A stretch of DNA of 64,000 nt from Eutreptiella sp. 'Long Island Sound 2002'. Its lineage: Eukaryota; Protista; Euglenida. Both the position numbers and the translations under genes were made by a program. Under the pieces are notes generated by a model. The model saw nothing but the letters and a program-made list of their open reading frames with translations. It had not been told where the DNA came from and ran no database searches. Numbering within the stretch: the first letter of the stretch is position 1; every line of letters starts with the position of its first letter. This document shows positions 17,185 through 28,902 of this stretch, piece by piece. The stretch is from the NCBI GenBank assembly GCA_964036045.1, contig OZ038378.1:174964001-175028000 (forward strand), written 5' to 3'.

Positions 17185-17316
17185 GGCAAGGACTCAAAGG
17201 TCTGAAGAGGCAGCAAGGGGTGCGAAGGTGGGGTGGGGTGCAAAGGCACCCTCAGGACGAACGCAACTACAACCCTGCCGCTGCCCGTTTGCCTGCCCTT
17301 GCCCTTGCCAAATCTC

Positions 17317-17705
17317 CCCAACTCCATGTTTGTTGTGGACACAATGCAGCGCATTCTGCAGTTTTGCAGTTCCAGAGTTGTGGAACTACCCTGCCCCTCT
17401 GTAGTCTGATGGTCAGGTTGCAGTGTCCGCATTAGGCTCTGGCTGCGCCTGCCCCGCGACTGTCATCGCCTTCTGTCCATGGTGCCATTGTTCGGCGCTT
17501 CCGCTGAGCGTTCGGTGAGCTGGTGCTGGTCCCTTGACCCTGCTTCCGCTATCTACACTGGCGCTTCGGGCTCTATAGGGTTATAGGTACCCTTCCGTGC
17601 TGCATGACACCGTTGAAGCCATGGAGGGGGACGCCGGCGCGGAGTTGTCCAAGCGGGCCCCTTGTGATGAGGTCGAGAAACTTAGATTGCGGGGGGAGGG
17701 GGGTT
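17317..17705 (-). repeat. ~387 bp direct duplicate (R') of the LINE 3' end at 27943-28331 (R)
   Basis: Colinear at a constant offset of 10626 bp, with about nine substitutions by manual count. Includes the last codons of the LINE ORF (SPRNLSFSTSSQGARLDNSA...CSTEGY). Confidence 0.9.
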
Positions 17706-18009
17706 TTGTTTCGACACCCTGCCTGGCATGCACAGCACTGCTACATTCACAGACAATTCTTCGGACAGCCCTGTACTGCTCACCATGCCAGTACCAGACA
17801 GCTGAATGCCCCCGCGCTGGGGCTATGAATAGACACAGGGCCCACGTACCTGGGTGGGTGGGTGGGCTGAAAAACAGTAAACTCTGAACAAGGGTCAAAA
17901 CATAAAGTTCTTGGGAACTTTTGGTTTTGTTTCGACACCCTGCCTGGCATGCACAGCACTGCTACATTCACAGACAATTCTTCAGACAGCCCTGTACTGC
18001 TCACCATGC
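17702..18009 (-). repeat. Split-direct-repeat 3' terminus of YR retrotransposon E1: B1 (18009-17923), A2 (17881-17864), B2 (17788-17702)
   Basis: An 87 bp segment (GGTTTTGTTTCGACACCCTG...CACCATGC) is duplicated with one mismatch. Between the copies lies GGGCTGAAAAACAGTAAA, identical to 27921-27938 upstream of the E1 gag start. Confidence 0.7.
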
Positions 18010-18164
18010 ATATATCACACTGCAGAGCAGTACCTTGGTGGTGTGTGCTAAGCGTGGTCATAACTGAAGGTGCAGAGAGGGCTGTCTGTCATGGAGGTCT
18101 GACTGGAGTGAAAAGAGCACTGTCAAACACCTGTCGTTCTCCCCCCCCCTCCTCCCGGCGCCGG

Positions 18165-18308
18165 CTAGCCTCGCAATGAGGTCTGCCCCATATAAGAGGT
18201 GGGCACATATTTTATAGTGGAGAGTGCAGTTTCAGTGGCCGCGGCCTCTATGACTGCCCGCTGGGCTGATCCCCACTTGAATATACGGGATATTGCATCG
18301 GCAGGGTT
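18165..18308 (-). pseudogene. C-terminal remainder of the E1 RNase H (NPADAISR...)
   Basis: AAC CCT GCC GAT GCA ATA TCC CGT ... reads NPADAISRIFKWGSAQRAVIEAAATETALSTIKYVPTSYMGQTSLRG*. This completes ...LSYVPSRW, which is cut at 23274. Confidence 0.75.
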
Positions 18309-18919
18309 TTACACTAACTCCAACAATCTGCAAACAAGCACGACAGAATCCAGCGCTCTCCGTAAACCAGACGACAGTCAATGCCACTCAGGCATACTCC
18401 TACCCCCAAAGAAATGGATATTTCTTAAGACAGTCACTGTCGTCGTCACAGAACCACCAGCTGTCAATCCTAGCATCCAAACTGGAAAGCACATAGCGGA
18501 AATAACGGACAAAACGTCCCCAGATCACATAAACTAAAGCTACTGTACAGCACGCCACCTCCTGTTGCACCCTTCAGGCCCACTCAACAGCACTAGAGGC
18601 CAGAGGGACCATCTAGGCAGCAAACAGCATTCAAACTGGAAGCACAAAGCAAAAAATGTCCGAGCAGCCTATGACGGCCACGCAGGACAGCCCCAACCTT
18701 CCTGGTCCACCTCGCTGTGGCAGGGTCGCTGCAGGCAGACCCGGCGAATATAAAGTGATTGCCTTATCCGCGATACGGACGTGGTTCGTAAGAACCAGCA
18801 AGTCACCATACATTCGCGGGGCCGGCGCCCACGTCAGCGCACTGCAGCACTGTTGAGGCAGAGCAGCTGGCTGGCGACCAATTCGAAACCGGCGTCCTGG
18901 ACCCCCCCCCCCTCCCCCA

Positions 18920-19381
18920 TCACTTGCCTGCAGGCCAGGGAAAAGGAGCCACCGACCCAAAATAAGGATACGGTCTCTGCAGCTCCTTCCACACCACATA
19001 CCTATCCTCTGCTGCTGTCCTGCATGCCTCTCTGTCAACGAATCGAGGCCTTCGGCTCGGCGGATCCGCCGGATTTTTATCCAACGGGACATAAAAAACA
19101 GCGAACTGCACCCTGCTCCAGCGCCTCCACCAAAAAAGGTGGCGTAAAATACGGTTCTGGACAGGCAAAGACGTCCCACAGCGCAAGCCCAAAAACTGAC
19201 TCCTTGCAACCAAACTGTCCGAGCCCACAGCCATCCACAGCCATTATATCCTGCTATTTTGAATGCTTGCACCAAAGCCAATAATTCTGCCTGCTGAAGC
19301 GAGTCAACCCAAGCAGGGCACTTATAGCACCTGATGCCACTGCCAGGCACAAAAATTCCATAACGGAAGCCTCTGTTGGGC
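18920..19381 (-). pseudogene. RNase H of YR retrotransposon E2, displaced by the inversion; one frameshift near 19240
   Basis: GFRYGIFVPG...VDSLQQAELLALVQAFKIAGY, then AVGSDSLVAR...QNRILRHLFW...FYVPLDKNPADPPSR. These are DIRS-type RNase H motifs. Confidence 0.75.
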
Positions 19382-19789
19382 CCACGCATTATTGGAGGGC
19401 CTCAAAACAGCATGCAGTGCTTCATCTGCGGTGGACCAGGCCAATGGGCCAGAAACTGCCCACACGCGGCCGTCACGGGAACTCTGCACCAGCCGCATGT
19501 CAGGGCCAAGATATCACAGGTGGGCGACCAGACCATCCTCACCAGCAACAAAGGGTGGTCGTTCGACTTGAACGGCCCCCCGCCGTCAAACTGCCGGCGT
19601 TGTGCGAGAATGCACTGGGAAATGTTCCCATGCGGCCAGCAAGGTACGGTGTCTGCACTGCCCCAGACAGACCAGCAGCCTGCCCAGAACGTGCAAATGC
19701 CACGGTCGTCGTCCAGCCAGGAGGATCTGCTCATGAAGGCGGTCGGAGCGCTTTTGCAGGGTGGTGGGGGCATGTCAAACCAGCAATGA
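19379..19789 (+). CDS. E1 gag C-terminal half with zinc knuckles
   Basis: CFICGGPGQWARNC (CCHC-like, H replaced by Q) and PPSNCRRCARMHWEMFPC. The N-terminus is missing here and is found at 27762-27196 on the minus strand. Confidence 0.75.
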   Translation, partial: GPRIIGGPQNSMQCFICGGPGQWARNCPHAAVTGTLHQPHVRAKISQVGDQTILTSNKGWSFDLNGPPPSNCRRCARMHWEMFPCGQQGTVSALPQTDQQPAQNVQMPRSSSSQEDLLMKAVGALLQGGGGMSNQQ

Positions 19790-21988
19790 GACCATGGCAG
19801 GACCGGCGTCTCCGCAGTGGGAAACGAGACGCTGGCCCCGATCACAGTACACATGGGCTGGAGGGCACATGATGCAGCACTACACGCTCTCACACAGGAG
19901 TGGGGCTCAGGAAACCTGGGCACTGCGGTCCGAGCCATCGAGGAAAGCTCCGTGGGAACATACCTCTGCCATGTCAGGATGGCATTACGAGGACGGGACC
20001 CGAATTCCCTATTGGAAGACGCCTTCACGACCAGCCTCCAAGTCCTCGCTCTCCGGAAACGGGGATTCTCAGCAGCCAAAAACCTCCAATCTGGCCTGTG
20101 CTACCTGGAGAGGTTGGGAGCACTACCGACTTTTATCACGGACCGCCACCGCCTTCAAGTCCAGGCCATTGGCAGGATGGCCCGAGGGGAGGAACTCCCC
20201 CGAATCTGGGCAACCATGGACCACTTCACGTCGCTGGGGGAGCACAGGGTTCACTGGGCCTGGGGCCGAGTCTTTTTCGCGGTGGGTATGGCCATCACCA
20301 TGTGCCTCAGGGTCACCGAGGTGGCTACGCTACGATGGGGTTGGCTCCAATACCCTGGATGGTTTGTCTTCTTCGACTACAAGGTCAACAAGACAATGGC
20401 TGCCCAGCCAATCCCACCGTTTTGGGAAACATGGAGGAGGTGGCTTTGGGAAAATCGCCGCGACCACCACCGTGAAGAATCCACCTTCTTGCCAGGAGGA
20501 CCAGACACCCTACGCCAGCTACAACGACAGCTCTTCAAGGGAACGGAATACGATCTCAGCGGCTGGCATCCATGGAAGAGAATGGGCGCCGCCTGTTTCC
20601 GCGCGCTGGGAGGCTCGCTCACAGCACTGGCAATATGGGCAAGATGGTGCACTCCAAGACAAGCGGCGAGGTACGCAGCCCACCCCCCATCATGGCAACT
20701 CCCAACCAGGGTTGTCCTACCTCAAGCCACAGGTCAATCGGGGTTCATCACACGTGACTGCGAGTGGAAGTGGATCAAGGTCAAAGAACTTTGGCATGAG
20801 GACGCCTTCGGATGGGACAAGGGGCGGAAAAAGGGACCAGGAATCCCAGTGGTCCAGAACTTCGCCAGACCCACTACAGTGGAAGAGGTGTTGGACTCCG
20901 ACACCGACGAGGACGGCATGGACGTGGCCGATGACGACACCTGGAGGCAGCCCCCAATCCAACCCACCGGGGCTGCGCCCAACTCAACCACCGCCCACAC
21001 GGAGCTTGGCAGAGACACGAGCACAGTCACGACAGGGACCGACAGGGACCGAAGGGGATGCAGCAAACGGAGCACACCAGCAACGCGAAGGAACCCCGAC
21101 CGCGGTCGAGGGAACACAGGGGCAACCTGCAGAACAGGGACCCCGACCTCCTACCCTGCCACACCCCCCATCACCAACACCCGTACCAGGGGACTCCAGG
21201 ACCGATCCAGCAGTCGACGCCCCCACCCTGTCAGCCATGGCAGACCCCCCAGGGTAGCCCTGCACCGCGGCTGCCGAGGCCCACACATCCATACCGCCGG
21301 CAACATGTACCTACAGAAACCCGGACAGACAGCCCAGCGGAGGAACCGCAAGATGTGGAGGATAAAATGTCCAGCGCTCCAACCGACTCCCAAGGACGCA
21401 AAGCCCTCAGTGGACCCGGATCCCGGACTTCACGGACTTTACCACAATGGTCTACTGATGGCTCTGAAAGGGACTGGTGACACGATACCGCCAGACCAAC
21501 TGTGCTGGGAAAGAGACCTCCATCCCCCTCCAATGAGTCCCTCGACACAAGACGTGGGAAGGCAAGGAAGCAGGACACTGACCCAGGCCCACCCCCTGCT
21601 CTGTTTGCATGGCCTGCTGCAGACGAGGTCCCACACTGGGGGTACTTGGTCTCGGCGCCTCAGAACCAAGGTAGATTCTGCCACTGGAGGCCTGTGCGTG
21701 TGCAACATGCTAGAGATGGAGCAGAATGGGAGCCCAATCGACACGCTGGAGACGATGAAGAACATTGTGAACCAGATGGCACGCAGGAAGAGCTCCCCCT
21801 GGACGATCTTTGGGTTGTTGCGGGACTTGGGGACAATGGTGCTGACCAAGGCAGCAAACCGCCAGCAAGGCCAAGTAGCCGTAACCCGGTTCCACGCCAT
21901 GTGGGCAGGCCTCAAGTTAGGGGACATGAGAGTCTGGGACGTCTGTACCAATCCCACGGGACATGTGGCAAAAGTTTCGGCCCCCTAA
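19790..21988 (+). CDS. E1 tyrosine recombinase ORF with a long low-complexity linker and a pre-RT region
   Basis: Catalytic signature: MCLRVTE (R), WHPWKRMGA (H-x-x-R), WARW (H/W), AARYA (Y). In frame with gag after a single TGA. Confidence 0.85.
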   Translation, partial: DHGRTGVSAVGNETLAPITVHMGWRAHDAALHALTQEWGSGNLGTAVRAIEESSVGTYLCHVRMALRGRDPNSLLEDAFTTSLQVLALRKRGFSAAKNLQSGLCYLERLGALPTFITDRHRLQVQAIGRMARGEELPRIWATMDHFTSLGEHRVHWAWGRVFFAVGMAITMCLRVTEVATLRWGWLQYPGWFVFFDYKVNKTMAAQPIPPFWETWRRWLWENRRDHHREESTFLPGGPDTLRQLQRQLFKGTEYDLSGWHPWKRMGAACFRALGGSLTALAIWARWCTPRQAARYAAHPPSWQLPTRVVLPQATGQSGFITRDCEWKWIKVKELWHEDAFGWDKGRKKGPGIPVVQNFARPTTVEEVLDSDTDEDGMDVADDDTWRQPPIQPTGAAPNSTTAHTELGRDTSTVTTGTDRDRRGCSKRSTPATRRNPDRGRGNTGATCRTGTPTSYPATPPITNTRTRGLQDRSSSRRPHPVSHGRPPRVALHRGCRGPHIHTAGNMYLQKPGQTAQRRNRKMWRIKCPALQPTPKDAKPSVDPDPGLHGLYHNGLLMALKGTGDTIPPDQLCWERDLHPPPMSPSTQDVGRQGSRTLTQAHPLLCLHGLLQTRSHTGGTWSRRLRTKVDSATGGLCVCNMLEMEQNGSPIDTLETMKNIVNQMARRKSSPWTIFGLLRDLGTMVLTKAANRQQGQVAVTRFHAMWAGLKLGDMRVWDVCTNPTGHVAKVSAP

Positions 21989-23274
21989 CTGGCTGGAAGC
22001 CCACTCGGAGGCGCCAGCACAACCACATGGCGCCGACCGCAAGCTGGAGGCCATGGCGACAAGGCTGGTGGAAGATGGCCTACTCCACGAGGTACTGGAT
22101 GGCAGGGCGCCAAATGCGCGAGCATTCACCAAGGCCAAGTCCCGGGAGAAAGGGTCCCTCATCATCAACATGACCATAGTCAATGAACGATGCACCAGGC
22201 TCCAACGCAGGCTACGGCTCCCCACCATGGAGTCGCTGGCGACATACTTGAGATCCGCAGCGACCGCGGGCAGGACCACGTACTTCTCTAAGTTAGATGT
22301 CAGCAACATGTTCTGGAGTTGCAGGCTGCCGCAGTCGGAGGCCGGCAACGTACGGTTTGGGGTCAGGGGCAAAGTTCTGGGCTTCCACAGCCTCCCGTTT
22401 GGATGGAACTACAGCCCTATCATGGCCACAGAGCTCCTGTCCAAGTCGTTGGACAAGCTGGGGGAGGTACCGGTGGAGGTGATAGTATATTTCGACGACA
22501 TCCTCATTGCGGGCGACAGCCCGGAGTGGTGGAACAGGTCACTCACAAGCTCGGGAGCATCCTTATGGCGGACGGATGGCGGATCAGTGCAAAGTCACTC
22601 ACGACGGCGGACACACACATCCAATGGATGGGGAAGGACCTCGATGGCCAGAGCTGGACTGTCACATCTTCAGCCGAATACACAGAAGGCATGGTGGCTC
22701 TCTGGATCTCCCTGGCGACATGCGGCTATAACCAAAAGCACCTCAGACGGCTACTGGGCAAGATGGCGTGGGCTGACAGGCCAGGCCGTGAAGCAATGAC
22801 GCACACAAGTGGTCCAATGGCGTGGCTGATGTTGGGGCCGGTCCAGACGACGTATACACCACCGGCAGTGCTGAAGGCATTTTGGGAGGCCACCCTCACC
22901 CCGTGGCAAGCGTAGCAGTACCACGACCCAGGGCCCGTTGACTGGTACGTGGACGCAGCACAATTCGGCAGGACCTATGTGGCAGGACTTTGGGGACGCG
23001 GCACTAGCGCACAATTGTGGGAATGCTCGTCAGGGGTGCGGAACCAGCAGGCAGCAGAACTCGATGGCGTCAAACGGGCAGTCAAATTGGCGGCATACAC
23101 TGGACGCAGGCACCTCCATTTGGGTGTGGACAACTTGGCGGCCGTATGGAGCGTCCTCCGTCGACGCACAAGGATCCACCACCGCGACAGGGCACGATGC
23201 CTCAGGCGTATCCAAAACACCATGCGCTGGAGCGGATTAACGCTGTCACTAAGTTACGTGCCTTCCCGTTGGAA
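21963..23274 (+). pseudogene. E1 reverse transcriptase and RNase H (frameshift ~22525, stop at 22913, truncated at 23274 by E2)
   Basis: FSKLDVSNMFW, LPFGWNYSP, YFDDILI, QWMGK, LRRLLGKMAW. RNase H motifs WYVDAA, QQAAELDG, GVDNLAAV, SYVPS. Confidence 0.9.
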
Positions 23275-26200
23275 GTGATGTTTTTATTGTAAAAACAGAG
23301 GTTTTGAGCGACTAACGAAATTGGTCTGCATTGTTTGCACTGCCTGTCTGAAATATACTGTGACCTCAGTACATTATTGCGATACATGTTTTAGTGCATT
23401 TTTGATTTGCATCCATGGGTGATGGTACTCTTGCGCTGGAAATCCTGCTTGATTTTGCTAAGCAGGCATTTGATTTGTGGTCGGAGTACCTGGGGTCTAA
23501 CATCCTGGAGCGGGCAGCCAACACCACGTGGAACCGCATGACCAACATGGAGGGTGGTGCTGGCAGAGTGACTGAAGCCCTGAATCGAATTTTCCCGGAG
23601 CAAATCGGAGACCACCAAAAGTTGCGGAACCTGCTGACGGCATATGAACTCTGGTCTGGTCACATTTTGGCGTCCCCGGCTTTGGTGTTTGTCCAGGATG
23701 GTTTAAGCTTTGTGCTGGAGCCGGGTTGGGAGGTACAGCTGCAGCAGTACAGGAATGGCTTTGTTGAAAAGGTCAGGGCTGGGAGGGACCATCACACTGG
23801 TGGTCACACGGCGACTCAGTCTGGGAAGAGTGGTTCTAAGCCACCAGTGGATAGTTTTGCGACCGAGCTATCACAGACAGATGACGATCAGCATATGGTA
23901 GACCCGGAGAGAGGCCAGCTGAATTTGGAGGGGGCGGCAGAAGTGGTGAATCAAGCGAAGGTCCTCTCGAAAAAGAACATGAAGAGTTTGCGCAAGAGGC
24001 TTGGGGCTCCCAAGTATGTTCACCACTTTGTGAAGTTAATAAGCGAACTCGCAGAGGAACATGAGGGGTCAGCGGAATTTGGCCCAGTGGAGGTAAAAAT
24101 CTGGGAGGTCCTGCTGAAATGCGACGAGAAGGGGGAAAAGCATTTGAAAGATGAAGAAAAGATCCGGAGGTCCAAGGAAAAAGAGCGCAAAAAGAAACAG
24201 AAGCGGCGGGCCAGAAAGAAGACCGAGAAGGCGCGTAAGAGCAAGAAAAAGAAGTCGTCCAGGTCTGGGAAGTGGAGTGATTCGAGCTCTGATAGCTCTC
24301 CGACGTCGGACTCGTCGTCAGGATCCAGCTCTGATGATACTTCGGATACGGACAGCTCCAATAGTGGGGATCGGAAAGACAGGAGGAGCAGTGGTGCTGA
24401 GCGCCGATCACGACCTAGCCATTTTGAGTTTTGCTGGATCAACGGCAAGAAACACTTTTGGATGCGGAATGGCCAATGGCAAGGCTGTTCTGGTCCACCA
24501 AGTAAGGAATGCAGGTACCGTGGGAAGAGGCACTGGGCGTTCCGAGCCCAGGAGTTCGGCTGCCGATGACATGCAGGGTCGGGGGGCCATGAGGCAACGG
24601 AAACTGGGCTCGCATACGCCCCCGTGTCACAGGCGCATGGTCATAACCACATTGTTCAGTGTTTTTCTTGCTGCACTGCAGCGCAGACCAGTTCTGTACC
24701 ACACCAGGTGGTTGCTGACTTTGGCTCGGGGGGGGGGGGGATCCAAAATGCGGAAGCGACGAAATAGCGAAATGGCCTTGAAGAATTCGTGGCGGCGGAA
24801 GGAGAACCATTCAGATCGTCATATGCATCAATCCTCTGGTGGAGATTGGAGCCAGGCACAAGGCTGGGGTATGTGGCAGCGCTGCGGCAGTTCCTCAGGT
24901 ACTCGCGCGTCCATGGGTGGTTATCCCCGAGGGAGGCCCTGGACGGCGATTGCTGGAGATTGCAAGGGATGGGTGTTTCGAAGGGCCGGTCAAAAAGGTC
25001 CTATCTGGACTCAGGATGGCGGAGAAGGCAGGTGTCATTCGGTCCCTGGTGCGAGGGTCGGACTGGATTTTCTCCAAGTCCCTGGAAAAAATGCGAACGA
25101 AAAAGAACAGCAGGCGGATACAATGGTCACCGTCAAGAATCCTGTATGAGGTGGCAGCCGGCAAAGGGACGTTCACATGGCCGGAAATGGAATGCATTGC
25201 ATTGGCAGCATTATCACTATGCAACCTGTTACGCATCAGTGAGGCATGGACGGCCCACCAGAGCGGGCTGGGCCAACTGGTATTCCGAGGAGAAAAGAGC
25301 CGCCCAGGCATCCAGGTGCAAGACTCGGGGCCGTGGGCCGACAGGTGGCTGCGCTTTCTCGACGAGGAGCGACGCAGGAGGGGGGGGAATGGTGCAGTGG
25401 CATTCAACTTTTCATCCCCGAGCGAATTGGAAGCCCAGTGGGTCGAGTTGGTCATTGGGACGAGCCACAGATCCTTGCGCTGGCATGGGCACCGACGGGG
25501 AGGCACAGCACAGGCATAGGCAGCTGAGGCTAGAGGTCCCCTCCTGCAGCTCATGGGAGGGTGGTGCACACCATCAGTGGCGGTCTCCTATGCAACGCCC
25601 ACTCACGCCTGGGAGTTCGAGAGTAGACGACGACAGCCAGTCCCGGTGCGAGAAGGAGGGAGCTCAAAGTCGCGTTTGGAGAGTGGTCAGCCCTTGAGTG
25701 GTGGGGTACGTGGGTCCGATGAGACATCCGTGAACTCGGTCGTGGTTCGGCCGAGAGGAGAATGGCGCGATACTGGGAACCGTTGACGTGGCCAGAAAGA
25801 GGAGAAGGGCAAACTCGACAGGACCTGGAGCGTTGAGGTTTGACCCGGAGGCAGTGGAAGACTCGACTGATGAGGGAGAAGGTATTGCAGATGCAGGAGA
25901 CCAGTGATTTGGAAGTTGGAGGGGTGCTGAAAAGATTGGTGGAGTCAAGCCCGAAGGCGTTGGAGAACGACCTGGAAGAAGGGTTGTTGGTCCTGTTATC
26001 AGGGGTCATGGAGGTGGCAGGCTCCCAGGCTGTGGGGGCATTAGCCTCTGTGCCGCAGGCTCTGGACGCAATGCCAAGAGATGAATGGGAGGATGAAGAT
26101 GAGGAGAGCTATTATTCTGATGAACATGGAGAGGAGGACGTCAACCCCGACCTGGCGGGCGAAGGCATTGGAGAGTGTGGAAGGGTGCAGCTCAGTGAGT

Positions 26201-27198
26201 CGCTGTGAAGCAGAGCTGTGCCGGACGACTTGTCGCACAAATGTCGAGATTGGTTAAAGGAGACGGGGGAGGGGGTTGGGGACAGCAAAGGAGTGGGGGT
26301 GGCTGAGATGCTTTAGAGCCTGGTGGAGGGCGGTTCTTTGCGCCGGGTGTCACAGTCACTGGGGGCGTCGGGCAAGGCCCGTGTCATTCCAAAGAATAGC
26401 GAAAAATGCAGCTTCATCATGAATTGCATGAAACAAAATGCTTCTGACTGTCGCCCTCCCCCCAAATTTGTGCTGCCCCAGATGGAGGCGTTGCGTGACT
26501 GTTTATTGCTGCGGAAGCGCAAAAGGGTTTATATGATTAGGTTTGATGTTTCCAATTGCTATTGGAGCATTTTGATACCCAAGCGTTGGAGGGATATTTT
26601 CCAGGTGTCAGTCTTCGGACAGAATTATGCATGGTCTCCCCTGCCTTTTGGCAGGGAATATTCCCCTGTGATCTGCCAGCGATTGATGGGAGCCCTGGCG
26701 GAAAATTCTGTATTTGATCTGCGAGTGCTCCTGTTTACTTACCTTGATGATATTCTAGCAGCAGGGGCGCTCAGACATCTGAAAAGGGCAGTGCATAGGC
26801 TGAGAGAAAGGGCTTCGAGAGGTTTTTGGGTAGGTTGGAGTGGGCTTTGAGGCCGCAGGGAGGAACTGCCCCTTTTTTGGCTGGGGCGTACACATGGAAG
26901 TTGCCAGGTGAACAAAGGGTGCCGCTAAGTCTGGTGAGACCGTTGCTTACGGCAGTGGTGTTTGCTGTTTTGCCCCCGTGTTATGCTAGACAACCATATG
27001 TGTGGCGAGGGCCACCTTGTTCTGTGCAAGATTTCATCATTTTGGCTGATGCCGCCAGCTTGGAACCTACTAGAGTGCTTGATTTTGTGGGGAAAAATTT
27101 TGACACTAAGAGGAGGCGCATGGAGAACAGGAAAGGAATGGTGACTGCTCTACTGCGGAGCTGGCTCAGGCTGAGGTTGGGTCCGGAGCGGCTACTGG
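23275..27198 (+). mobile_element. YR retrotransposon E2 (gag 23415-24569; YR ~24790-25620; RT 26323-27198), nested in E1; its 3' part is at 19381-18309 on the minus strand
   Basis: 384 aa gag-like ORF. YR motifs LLRISE, WHGHRRGG, GGW, VSYA (frameshift and stop present). RT motifs RFDVSNCYW, LPFGREYSP, YLDDIL. Confidence 0.85.
24587..24726. mobile_element. ~140 bp short insertion (copy 1) between E2 gag and YR, flanked by TCGGGGGG
   Basis: Near-identical to 28755-28885 (CCATGAGGCAACGGAAACTGGGCTCGCATACG...CACCAGGTGGTTGCTG). Confidence 0.75.
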
Positions 27199-27762
27199 GC
27201 CTTGGGACTGCGGTTGTGGGATTGGCATGGTAGAATTCTGGCCTTGGCGCTTATTGCGGAGGTCTTCATGTACCACTGTCCATATGCTCTGGGCCAGTGG
27301 GTGGCTGGCCCAATTTGGGTCCATGCGGGAGTATTCGCGCAGTGCCACGGCGCGGCTCTGCATCCAAGCGTATAGCAGGTTTTCTGCAAGCAGTTTTTCA
27401 AGTTCAGCATTCGTACGGTCCGGGAGTGCAGCTGAGCGGAGTCGTTCATTTTCCAGCTTTGTCGCCGCCAGCTCGGAGATCTTCTCGGGTGTAAATGAAC
27501 TGTTTCGGTTTTGGGCCTCTCCGGGGCCTAGTGCTGGCGAGGGCGTGGGTGGGGCTGCCACATCCAAGACGGGTATAAAGCACTGGTCCGCCACGTTGAC
27601 CCGCAGGCCCGTCTTGATCTCGTAAGCTCGCAGTGCCTGCAGTAAAGTCGCTTTCTCGAGGTGGTTGATACCCGCATTCTCCGCCAAGAGCTTGAGCTGG
27701 TCATCGCCAATCCCCTGGTCCACGTGGAGCTCCTCCTGTTTCAGTTGCCATTCTGTGGCCAT
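27196..27762 (-). CDS. E1 gag N-terminal half (189 codons), separated from its C-terminus by the inversion
   Basis: INHLEKATLLQALRAYEIKTG resembles E2 gag IGDHQKLRNLLTAYELWSG. Joins in frame at GGCCCA to 19385 (PQSQ-GP-RIIGGPQNSMQCFICG). Confidence 0.7.
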
Positions 27763-28754
27763 CTCAGTGTAGTTGTGCTGCCGCTGCAGTGTTTCTAAGG
27801 GTCCCAGGACCCAATTTCTGAACTTGAGGAGGTCATTTGATGGAGGGTCAGCGGGGAGACCTGTTGGGCCCCCATTATCGTCCTACATTGCATCACCCAT
27901 GTGCCCGCGCCGGGAGGGGGGGGCTGAAAAACAGTAAAATCACCCAAGTCCATGTTTGTTGTGGACACAATGCAGCGCATTCTGCAGTTTTGCAGTTCCA
28001 GAGTTGTGGAACTACCCTGCCCCTCTGTGGTCTGGTGGTCAGGTTGCAGTGTCCGCATTAGGCTCTGGCTGCGCCTGCCCCGCGATTGTCATCGCCTTCT
28101 GTCCATGGTGCCATTGTTCGGCGCTTCCGCTGAGCGTTCGGTGAGCTGGTGCTGGTCCCTTGACCCTGCTTCCGCTATATACACTGGCGCTTCGGGCTCT
28201 ATAGGGTTATGGGTACCCTTCCGTGCTGCATGACACCGTTGAAGCCATGGAGGGGGAGGCCGACGCGGAGTTGTCCAAGCGGGCCCCTTGTGACGAGGTC
28301 GAGAAACTTAGATTGCGGGGGGAGGGGGGTTCCTCGCCCTCCATTGCCACCAGCTCCAGCGATGCCAGCAGTTGCACGGATGCTTGGGGCGACATTCGGG
28401 AGAATGGATGAGTTGTTGTGTGTGTAGGCCTGACTCGGTAGGGCGTGGCGGCCTTGTTACACGCTGTGGGTGTCTGGTCGAACCCACTGGTCCTACCGGG
28501 GCGCATTGCAGACCACGGCGCACCAGACGGCGTGCAAATTTGGATGTCCCACAGTGATGCCGGTGACGGTGGCTGTGATTTTGCAGGCGTGCTTGGCTGC
28601 GTCGCCGGCGGCGTGTCGGCCTCTTCTCCTGCTGCCGGGGCCGACACTGGCTGTGACATTTGTCCCTCCTCCCAGCCCCAAATGGACTCTTCCTCCGGGT
28701 CCGGCCCTCGTCCTCCTGGGGCCATGAGGCAACGGATGCTCGTCCTCCTGGGGG

Positions 28755-28902
28755 CCATGAGGCAACGGAAACTGGGCTCGCATACGCCCCTGTGTCACAG
28801 GCGCATGGTCATAACCACATTGTTCAGTGTTTTTCTTGCTGCATTGCAGCGTAGACCAGTTCTGTACCACACCAGGTGGTTGCTGGCTGTGCATTGGCAA
28901 TG
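28755..28902. mobile_element. 148 bp short insertion (copy 2) in the LINE C-terminal ORF, with a 12 bp target duplication GTCCTCCTGGGG
   Basis: GTCCTCCTGGGG at 28710, 28742 and 28903. The left end also carries a ~32 bp tandem duplication. The insert matches 24587-24717. Confidence 0.75.

Follow-up and report, generated by a model that had tools for sequence, protein, structure and literature searches.

How did two retrotransposons at one locus of the euglenid Eutreptiella sp. 'Long Island Sound 2002' come to lie in pieces, with halves of the same genes on opposite strands? In the window (the whole stretch of DNA analysed, 64,000 nucleotides), a preliminary description had recognized two nested tyrosine-recombinase (YR) retrotransposons, termed E1 and E2, split by a single ~7.8-kb inversion that could be reversed to recover the reading frames. 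The nested pair and a later inversion of about that size, splitting both elements, are borne out by our analysis; its simple two-breakpoint form is not, as the rearrangement comprises four junctions with losses and a swap of two segments, X and Y. With a probability of roughly 70%, we thus regard the locus as a decayed nested pair, E2 in E1, that subsequently underwent a complex four-junction inversion through host repair or replication (Table 1). We take the rearrangement as one complex event; an identical picture would result if several double-strand breaks had been joined, or if two or three events had followed one another.

Table 1. Features of the nested E1/E2 locus, in window coordinates.
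Feature	Position	Strand	Content
R_left	17316–17705		left copy of the 390-bp direct duplication flanking E1; part is a high-copy repeat
E1 3′ part	17700–18308	−	RNase H end (NPADAISR...) and split repeats B1, A2, B2
E1 repeats B1, A2, B2	18026–17923, 17922–17806, 17805–17702	−	repeat families D3 and D4
E2 3′ part (W)	18307–19382	−	RNase H body/end, 3′ region, single B repeat
E2 B repeat	18400–18307	−	terminates GTGTAAAA
J_L, left inversion junction	19378–19382		E2 RNase H (minus) head to head with E1 gag C-half (plus)
E1 middle block, inverted	19378–23274	+	gag C-half, YR, RT, RNase H N-part
E1 gag C-half with zinc knuckle	19379–19786	+	
E1 tyrosine recombinase	~20060–20740 in ORF 19790–21985	+	
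E1 RT	21930–22796	+	
E1 RNase H N-part	22916–23272	+	
E2 5′ block, inverted along with E1	23275–26804	+	first letters GTGATGTTTTT (repeat A1)
E2 gag-like ORF	23415–24566	+	
Insert in E2	24587–24722		137 nt, very high-copy
E2 YR-like ORF	24782–25516	+	LRISEA, HGHRRG
E2 RT	26317–26804	+	to YLDD and beyond
E2 segment X	26805–27055	+	251 nt; RT thumb/connection to first RNase H motif, ILADAA
E2 segment Y	27055–27181	+	127 nt; RT piece, normally between 26804 and X
J_1	26804/26805		blunt join, E2 5′ block to X
J_2	27055		X to Y, single common C
J_R, right inversion junction	27182		orphan T between Y end 27181 and E1 gag N-half 27183
E1 5′ part	27183–27941	−	A1 remainder 27941–27917, leader, gag N-half (ATG at 27762)
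R_right	27942–28331		right copy of the 390-bp duplication; abuts truncated E1 5′ end

E1 (~5.4 kb) and E2 (~5 kb) are degenerate members of two distantly related families of YR retrotransposons, each with the order gag, YR, RT and probable RNase H together with split direct repeats. Pfam RVT_1 was matched in E1 (5e-10) and E2 (5e-12), with scores across the two of 39.8–46.3 bits against a cut-off of 29.6, and the elements share 31% identity in RT (2e-18) and 23% in YR (2e-6). RVT_3 scored 21.5 bits on the E1 RNase H, just under its cut-off of 21.6; the RNase H motifs DAS/DAA, E and NPAD..SR are legible in the sequence. The E2 RNase H reads QQAELLAL... followed by YVPLDKNPADPPSR, with a frameshift, and the matching region of a continuous E2 relative falls into RT_RNaseH, RVT_3 and Peptidase_A17 clusters in the Atlas (score 0.94). 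No match to the E1 RT DNA was found in the phage collection.

The E1 recombinase is predicted to adopt the phage-integrase fold. Neither Pfam, searched with the window's YR ORFs and those of 12 close relatives, nor a PDB profile search with a shallow alignment gave a match, and with 12 sequences the AF2 model reached a pLDDT of only 38; a deeper alignment raised this value to 89.5. When the latter model was compared to the PDB with Foldseek, every one of the top 50 matches was to Cre, lambda Int, XerA, IntI or Tn1549 Int, with Cre and lambda Int at the best E of 4.7e-6. Moreover, PF00589 was matched by 4/40 relatives (best 2.5e-6), the Atlas score for Phage_integrase was 0.97, and the residues LRVTEV, HPWKR and AARY (R...HxxR...Y) are legible in the E1 sequence. 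The E2 YR aligns to that of E1 over the R and HxxR motifs, its C-terminal part being frameshifted.

Neither element can be functional at this locus. In E1, the zinc knuckle carries Q in place of H (knuckle comparison), ~104 nt kept in three other copies are missing at 21944|21945, and A1 is ~43 nt shorter than in six other copies for which 5′ ends were compared; B1 and B2 match at 96/104 positions, and A1 and A2 have a 25-nt remainder in common. The high-copy insert in E2 (k-mer depth ~1e5) corresponds to empty sites in other copies.

Comparison with intact E1 copies shows that E2 integrated into the part of E1 that encodes RNase H, in the same orientation and as one unit (GTGATG...GTGTAAAA). 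The nested arrangement reads TTGGAA|GTGATG...GTGTAAAA|CCCTG, whereas intact copies read TTGGAACCCTG. As had been described, the E1 RNase H is interrupted after ...YVPSRW and AA at 23274 and resumes with AAC CCT GCC GAT at 18308 on the minus strand, such that E2 lies beside an AA dinucleotide; these two positions are contiguous in four E1 loci (L013, L017, L019 and L020). The border near 18307–18308 is ambiguous by 2 nt within an A run. No target-site duplication is present at TTGGAA^CCCTG, as expected for recombinase-type integration, and the GGAA^CCCT insertion motif is common to a second copy. E1 itself is bounded on both sides by the 390-bp duplication, so its own borders lack such a duplication-free form. 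The two R copies match at 380/390 positions and are each other's closest kin, all remaining genomic matches being partial and ≤92% identical. Integration of E1 by homologous recombination via a captured R copy was considered and ruled out, as the 390-bp version of R occurs nowhere else in the genome. Because the E1 5′ end is truncated and this duplication flanks the element, the history of the locus may exceed a nested insertion followed by an inversion.

The inverted block (19378–27181, ~7.8 kb) has one edge midway through the E1 gag and the other where RT gives way to RNase H in E2. Several earlier observations hold at its edges: the gag N-half runs on the minus strand from 27762 downward, its zinc-knuckle C-half begins on the plus strand at ~19379, TGGGCCCA lies at 19377–19384, and the E2 RNase H is on the minus strand to the left of 19382. 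Alignment to other genomic copies, which the preliminary description had proposed as a check, joined the gag halves in 8 E1 copies, the RNase H halves in 4 E1 copies and RT to RNase H in 10 E2 copies. All eight other E1 loci have the gag N-half followed by 43 nt and then the C-half; these 43 nt, which fall between window positions 27183 and 19378 and encode about GMMMRQQGMQIATP, are missing from the window. Alignments of the E1 5′ part to nine E1 loci span 759–772 nt, every one ending at 27183. In E2, the 5′ block is collinear with L021–L030, and the order Z-Y-X-W is found in 10/10 fetched loci as well as in dozens of further matches; X comes after Y and directly ahead of W in all other E2 copies, with W starting 6 nt after X in ten of them. 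The window is thus alone in having X and Y swapped.

The four new junctions have 5 nt in common (J_L, where alignments to E1 and E2 copies place GGGCC on both sides), no bases in common (J_1), 1 nt in common (J_2) and a single orphan T (J_R). At these joints, gag lost 43 nt and E2 lost 59 nt, in pieces of 43, 10 and 6 nt. X, Y and the long tract are all in the same inverted sense. Re-inversion alone would restore neither element, because there are four junctions and not two. A simple inversion would have two junctions and keep its inner order; here, four junctions have few or no bases in common, short segments stand in a new order, and small losses and one added base are seen, as in complex rearrangements by template switching or multiple breaks. 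No inverted repeats were found in 14–32 kb, nor any copy-number gain inside the block, the sole nearby duplication being the 390-bp flank.

Could the arrangement be an artefact of assembly, through mis-joined repeat copies or a chimeric long read? The E2 family does have dozens of copies, and read support is limited to J_1 and J_R. Furthermore, a 252-aa ORF across J_L was found in an ENA contig that, being 100% identical to the window, we take to be the same assembly and not independent support; a 198-aa ORF across J_R is not on record in public assemblies. Against this stand the joints themselves, where the 0–5 nt in common are much too short an overlap to mislead an assembler, and their setting: the window contains no Ns, and the whole 20.8 kb lies gap-free within one 611-kb contig, the joints being ~66 to 86 kb from its end. 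Each of the four junctions, like each of the two E1|E2 borders, occurs only once in the genome, and other genomic matches stop at J_L. Read-derived contigs, compared over 22400–28300, bridge two of the junctions without any difference and at single-copy depth: J_1 is spanned by contigs from runs X2 and X3 (201 nt) and from run X4 of another study (289 nt), and J_R by a 141-nt contig of run X2 (27152–27292), the depth of which (12) is that of the single-copy E1 flank (11.4). On its left side, this last contig comprises only 30 nt and the orphan T, at the 31-letter minimum. Within the same interval, no read-derived contig is listed across J_2. The runs concerned may derive from the assembly's own sample or from the same clonal strain. 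In run X4, which carries J_1, the E1 parts are uncovered. Taken together, an artefact appears very improbable.

E2 inserted into the E1 RNase H first and the inversion came later; we favour a process in which the host's DNA repair or replication machinery rearranged the nested pair. As to mechanism, we incline to break-induced or fork-stalling template switching, whereby a polymerase would have made two short, poorly processive copies before one long tract. The four joints with losses, together with the segment swap, argue against a site-specific recombinase and for either template switching or end joining; the blunt form of two of these joints fits end joining better than template switching driven by microhomology. 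The proposal first made for this locus, i.e., a single two-breakpoint inversion via the 6-bp microhomology GGCCCA whose reversal restores both elements in frame, draws on the presence of this hexamer near both breakpoints and on the in-frame join there. However, TGGGCC is situated at 27195–27200, one base off from the 27196–27201 given for it, and neither position is the right breakpoint: E1 homology extends 13 nt past the hexamer to 27183, where E2 homology begins at 27181, and E1 resumes at 19378, 7 nt ahead of the point earlier assigned to it. Rather than breakpoint microhomology, GGCCCA is an internal repeat found twice in every intact gag at a spacing of 63 nt. The in-frame join omits 21 codons of intact copies, 20 nt of which remain in the window. 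Given also the 43 nt of missing gag, the X/Y swap and the 59 nt of E2 gone (from alignments of 8 E1 and 10 E2 copies), this version is practically untenable. Scarcely more credible is inversion of the block by an element-encoded tyrosine recombinase at inverted pseudo-sites, a role that had been suggested and that the data contradict. A YR is indeed encoded in both elements, and inversions were detected in 3/18 separately fetched copies; nevertheless, the breakpoints are in gag and RT/RNase H and not at the B|A junction, the elements' recombination site, no motif is common to the joints of the window and those of L017, L020 and L022, and an event with four joints, losses of 6–43 nt and one added base is not conservative.

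Template jumps by a reverse transcriptase on a composite E1::E2 transcript, with capture of the faulty cDNA at a chromosome break, would account for the ~43 nt lacking from the E1 5′ repeat and for the 390-bp local duplication in place of a clean recombinase-type border; few common bases and an added base are also typical of such joints, and the cDNA intermediates of DIRS-1 are for the most part linear and single-stranded (PMC7192593). However, the assembly has no locus bearing the E1|E2 borders that could have served as donor, and an inverted tract of 7.4 kb requires an opposite-sense template, which ordinary minus-strand synthesis does not offer. We hold this explanation to be very improbable. 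Several independent events, e.g., a tandem duplication of Y-X, a deletion in E2 and a later inversion with end deletions, could likewise yield the order Z-X-Y by steps that are each a common mutation; as at least three would be needed, all within 440 bp of one inversion breakpoint, and no intermediate is found in the genome, we consider such a history quite unlikely. No allele predating the inversion was found either. Finally, in-place inversions of 0.2–0.9 kb occur in L017, L020 and L022, with joints having 1–5 nt in common or filler bases. It is conceivable, albeit unlikely, that inversions are a recurrent, family-linked lesion of these retrotransposons arising from the elements' own replication rather than from host repair, possibly when cDNA synthesis jumps between templates or the recombinase nicks pseudo-sites; in that case, the inversion in the window, which spans two elements, would be the largest instance. 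L012, which has E2 pieces in both senses, was not counted as an inversion, as two adjacent copies may be involved.

Among known systems, the closest in layout are the VIPER/TATE elements of kinetoplastids (PMC6681497), which have the order gag-like, YR, RT/RNase H, as do E1 and E2 once their pieces are ordered as in other copies. Split direct repeats (A1 on the 5′ side, B1-A2-B2 on the 3′ side) are also common to VIPER/TATE, E1 and the E2 family. Some VIPER/TATE gag-like proteins have a CCHC knuckle, recalling the zinc knuckle of E1, and the hosts are in both cases Euglenozoa. Here, however, the host is a euglenid with a 2.3-Gb genome, and the likeness described is one of architecture. The window copy of E2 also differs in having only A...B, without the A2-B2 tail, whereas A2 and B2 follow B1 in L021–L030. 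DIRS1, Ngaro and PAT elements (order DIRS) resemble E1 and E2 in combining RT, and probably RNase H, with a phage-type tyrosine recombinase, E2 also in lacking a target-site duplication, and Ngaro and PAT resemble them in their split direct repeats as well; in most of these elements, however, the YR follows RT/RNase H. No methyltransferase domain was seen in E1 or E2. DIRS-1 is known to insert in other DIRS-1 copies and thus to form nested clusters.

Rearrangements by FoSTeS/MMBIR or by multi-break end joining typically have several joints in a small region, with 0–5 nt in common and at times one added base, and reordered short segments beside a long inverted tract with small losses; the locus is alike in these respects, differing in that no copy-number gain is seen in the block. 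With the Cre/lox pair of inverted sites and the Hin and Fim switches it shares a flipped segment enclosing a tyrosine recombinase gene, yet it has neither inverted recognition sites nor a conservative exchange, with four lossy joints instead. The locus does not work like recombinase-driven invertible segments; it is a case of ordinary genome decay, the inversion resembling sloppy DNA repair and not recombinase action.

The value of the locus is chiefly one of correction, namely that the inversion is neither cleanly reversible nor recombinase-made. It also documents, to the nucleotide, a rearrangement with four junctions in a euglenid, a setting for which the outcomes of DNA repair are little described; it gives the precise site at which a VIPER-like element inserted without duplication (GGAA^CCCT); and it hints that small inversions are frequent in these element families. 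As to the host, a 24-nt Euglena spliced-leader exon occurred 5458 times, against 0 for a control; the host is of the Euglena type in this regard.

The window contains no Ns. Between 17.3 and 28.4 kb it carries fragments of two retroelements, some on the plus and some on the minus strand, as read in six frames and with Pfam (see table). These are E1 and E2, the latter lying inside the RNase H of the former.

Element features and the four new joints (J_L, J_1, J_2, J_R) of the ~7.8-kb inversion
Feature	Position	Strand	Basis or joint structure
gag N-half	27762 downwards	minus	six-frame reading/Pfam
Zinc-knuckle peptide	from 19379	plus	six-frame reading/Pfam
Open frame, 732 codons	19790-21985		six-frame reading/Pfam
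RVT_1	21930-22796 and 26317-26847		Pfam
RNase H-like ends (YVPSRW..., NPAD..SR)	22916-23272; 18308 downwards; 19243-18923		six-frame reading/Pfam
J_L	19378-19382		GGGCC common to E1 and complement of E2
J_1	26804/26805		blunt
J_2	27055		one C in common
J_R	27182		one added (orphan) T between E2 start 27181 and E1 end 27183

Pieces of the window were located in other copies across the genome (2.28 Gb, 2317 contigs), where query 26600-27900 matched E1 at nine loci and E2 at dozens; 18 of these were fetched (eight E1, ten E2). As the preliminary description had proposed, the gag halves are neighbours in intact copies: in every fetched E1 locus (8/8), 27941 to 27183 is followed by 43 nt (41-44) and then by 19378 onwards; by the coordinates, this spacing puts both gag halves in one frame. 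The proposed contiguity of the E1 RNase H halves was likewise recovered, with 23274 passing directly into 18308 downwards in four E1 loci (reading ...TTGGAACCCTGCCGAT...), as was that of E2 RT and RNase H. All ten E2 loci share the order 26804, 43 nt, segment Y (27057-27181), 10 nt, segment X (26805-27055), 6 nt and the E2 3' part W (19382 downwards). By this comparison, nesting and inversion are real features of the window copy relative to its families.

The rearrangement itself departs from what had been described. In E1 sense, the ancestral order is a, m, b..Z, g1, Y, g2, X, g3, W, with a denoting the gag N-half, m the 43 gag nt now missing, b..Z the stretch from the gag C-half to E2 26804, and g1-g3 the E2 spacers that have gone; the present order is a, Y', X', (b..Z)', W. 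The three segments kept between a and W are all inverted, with the short two out of plain-inversion order. There is no support for a clean inversion that could be undone in frame: X and Y have changed places relative to their family order, all three spacers are gone, and 43 gag nt encoding about GMMMRQQGMQIATP are missing. Since X and Y are reordered and the spacers absent, E2 RT is broken at 26804/26805, where its frame also changes, and this would be so even without the inversion. Nor does the right breakpoint fall at 27196-27201, as E1 homology reaches 27183 and E2 homology starts at 27181. The GGCCCA named as breakpoint microhomology is present twice, 63 nt apart, in every intact gag; the in-frame gag join built on it relies on this internal repeat and omits 21 codons, 20 nt of which are still present in the window.

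That the scrambled order is an assembly artefact appears very improbable, as the joints are unique in the genome, lie within one contig and are in part bridged by read-set contigs. Probes of 100 nt centred on the joints matched in full at the window locus only, other matches ending at the joint, and full-match probes for both E1/E2 borders were likewise restricted to this locus. A public 611-kb contig, which from its sequence we take to be the same assembly, is 100% identical over 20.8 kb, every joint included; being a single contig, it places the joints deep inside, away from any scaffold join. Contigs built from public read sets were compared over 22400-28300, a stretch with J_1, J_2 and J_R. 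J_1 occurs without difference in 201-nt contigs of the runs X2 and X3, both from one sample, and in a 289-nt contig of X4 (another study, with another organism label). At J_R, a 141-nt contig of run X2 spans 27152-27292 at the depth of adjoining single-copy E1 sequence; left of the joint it has just the T and 30 further nt, exactly what the tool's 31-letter rule requires. For J_2, no bridging contig was listed among read-set contigs.

A site-specific recombinase needs inverted sites and exchanges strands without loss. No inverted repeat was found in 14-32 kb, bases were lost at all joints and one was added, and the breakpoints lie in coding regions, far from the B/A junction of the split direct repeats, where the elements recombine. 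The pattern in this single allele fits repair rather than a site-specific recombinase, and the suggested element-encoded recombinase is not supported as cause. Within repair, we lean towards replication template switching, whereby a broken end would copy 127 nt backwards, re-invade to copy 251 nt, and then copy a processive 7.4-kb tract until it switched back to the forward template. The joining of four double-strand breaks, for which two blunt joints speak, would look the same, as would a short series of separate events. Three of the 18 fetched copies carry in-place inversions (equivalent to 19780-20426 in L020, 21630-22382 in L017 and ~19079-19298 in L022) whose joints have 1-5 nt in common or none, with filler bases in some; these support a general process. 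Their sizes are ~650 nt (L020, C1:156.56 Mb), ~860 nt (L017, C7:65.54 Mb) and ~200 nt (L022, C1:13.50 Mb). For repeats, insertion into one another and scrambling afterwards are ordinary fates; the more exciting reading of the preliminary description is not supported.

As to identity, the RT domain is clear in both elements. Pfam gave no match on the recombinase frames, and a word search with the recombinase returned only unnamed close relatives. A profile search of a representative library yielded 144 relatives; four in a 40-sequence alignment match PF00589 (best 2.5e-6), and the profile's best PDB matches, weak at E ~0.1, are to lambda integrase. An AlphaFold model of the E1 recombinase (20060-20740; pLDDT 89.5) retrieved with Foldseek exclusively Cre, lambda Int, XerA, IntI or Tn1549 Int among its 50 best PDB matches (best E 4.7e-6, probability 1.0), and an Atlas feature search agrees with a tyrosine recombinase (0.97). 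The E2 recombinase frame aligns with that of E1 across the Arg and His-x-x-Arg motifs (23% identity, 2e-6), and the RTs are 31% identical; from these alignments, E1 and E2 are two distant families of one kind of element. Tool support for RNase H is weak (RVT_3 21.5 bits against a 21.6 cut-off; Atlas 0.94). VIPER and TATE have the order gag, YR, RT, RNase H with split direct repeats (PMC6681497), with which E1 and E2 agree, the likeness being one of gene order and repeats. The Euglena gracilis 24-nt leader exon occurs 5458 times in the genome versus 0 for its reversed control, and by this count the host is a Euglena-type protist.

Both elements are degenerate, and the other copies with ORFs listed are broken to differing degrees. 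E1 has Q in place of H in its knuckle, frame changes in RT/RNase H, and lacks ~43 nt of its 5' repeat A1 as well as ~104 nt at 21944/21945 that three other E1 copies have; this gap lies between the YR-linker and RT frames, its borders are not GT..AG, and it may reflect a simple deletion or a nonconventional intron that was spliced out. On either side of E1 lies one copy of a 390-bp direct duplication (17316-17705 and 27942-28331, 380/390 identical), the copies being mutual closest kin in the genome, with all other matches partial and at <=92%. The right copy adjoins the E1 5' end missing part of A1, and the left overlaps the normal 3' end by 3 nt. These flanks are not those of a clean recombinase-type insertion; the 390-bp repeat may have arisen as a large target duplication, or in a complex event, either the one described above or one before it.

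E2 carries frame changes, lacks the A2-B2 tail and holds a 137-nt high-copy insert. This ~137-nt unit (24587-24722, and 28750-28891) lies within the gag-like region, in a poly-G tract and with an ~11-nt duplication (GGNTCGGGGGG), and its site is empty in other E2 copies; a k-mer depth of ~100,000-fold in read sets marks it as a short repeat of very high copy number, SINE- or MITE-like. The window E2 is a single A...B unit (18307-18400 / 23275-23425), others end B1-A2-B2, and L026 has an additional A-B unit; terminal-unit number thus varies among copies, as recombination between repeats would produce. The target GGAA^CCCT is common to two independent E2 insertions (TTGGAA^CCCTGCC in the window, GAGGAA^CCCTTTC in L029), and the 3' flanks, in 6/6 clear cases, start with C right after the element end GTGTAAAA, which hints at a target preference. 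The E2 copies L024 and L025 (C10:46.5 and 48.6 Mb), 2 Mb apart, share flanks on both sides and are a segmental duplication; in L025, a tandem array of a ~26-nt unit is inserted at the X/W border.
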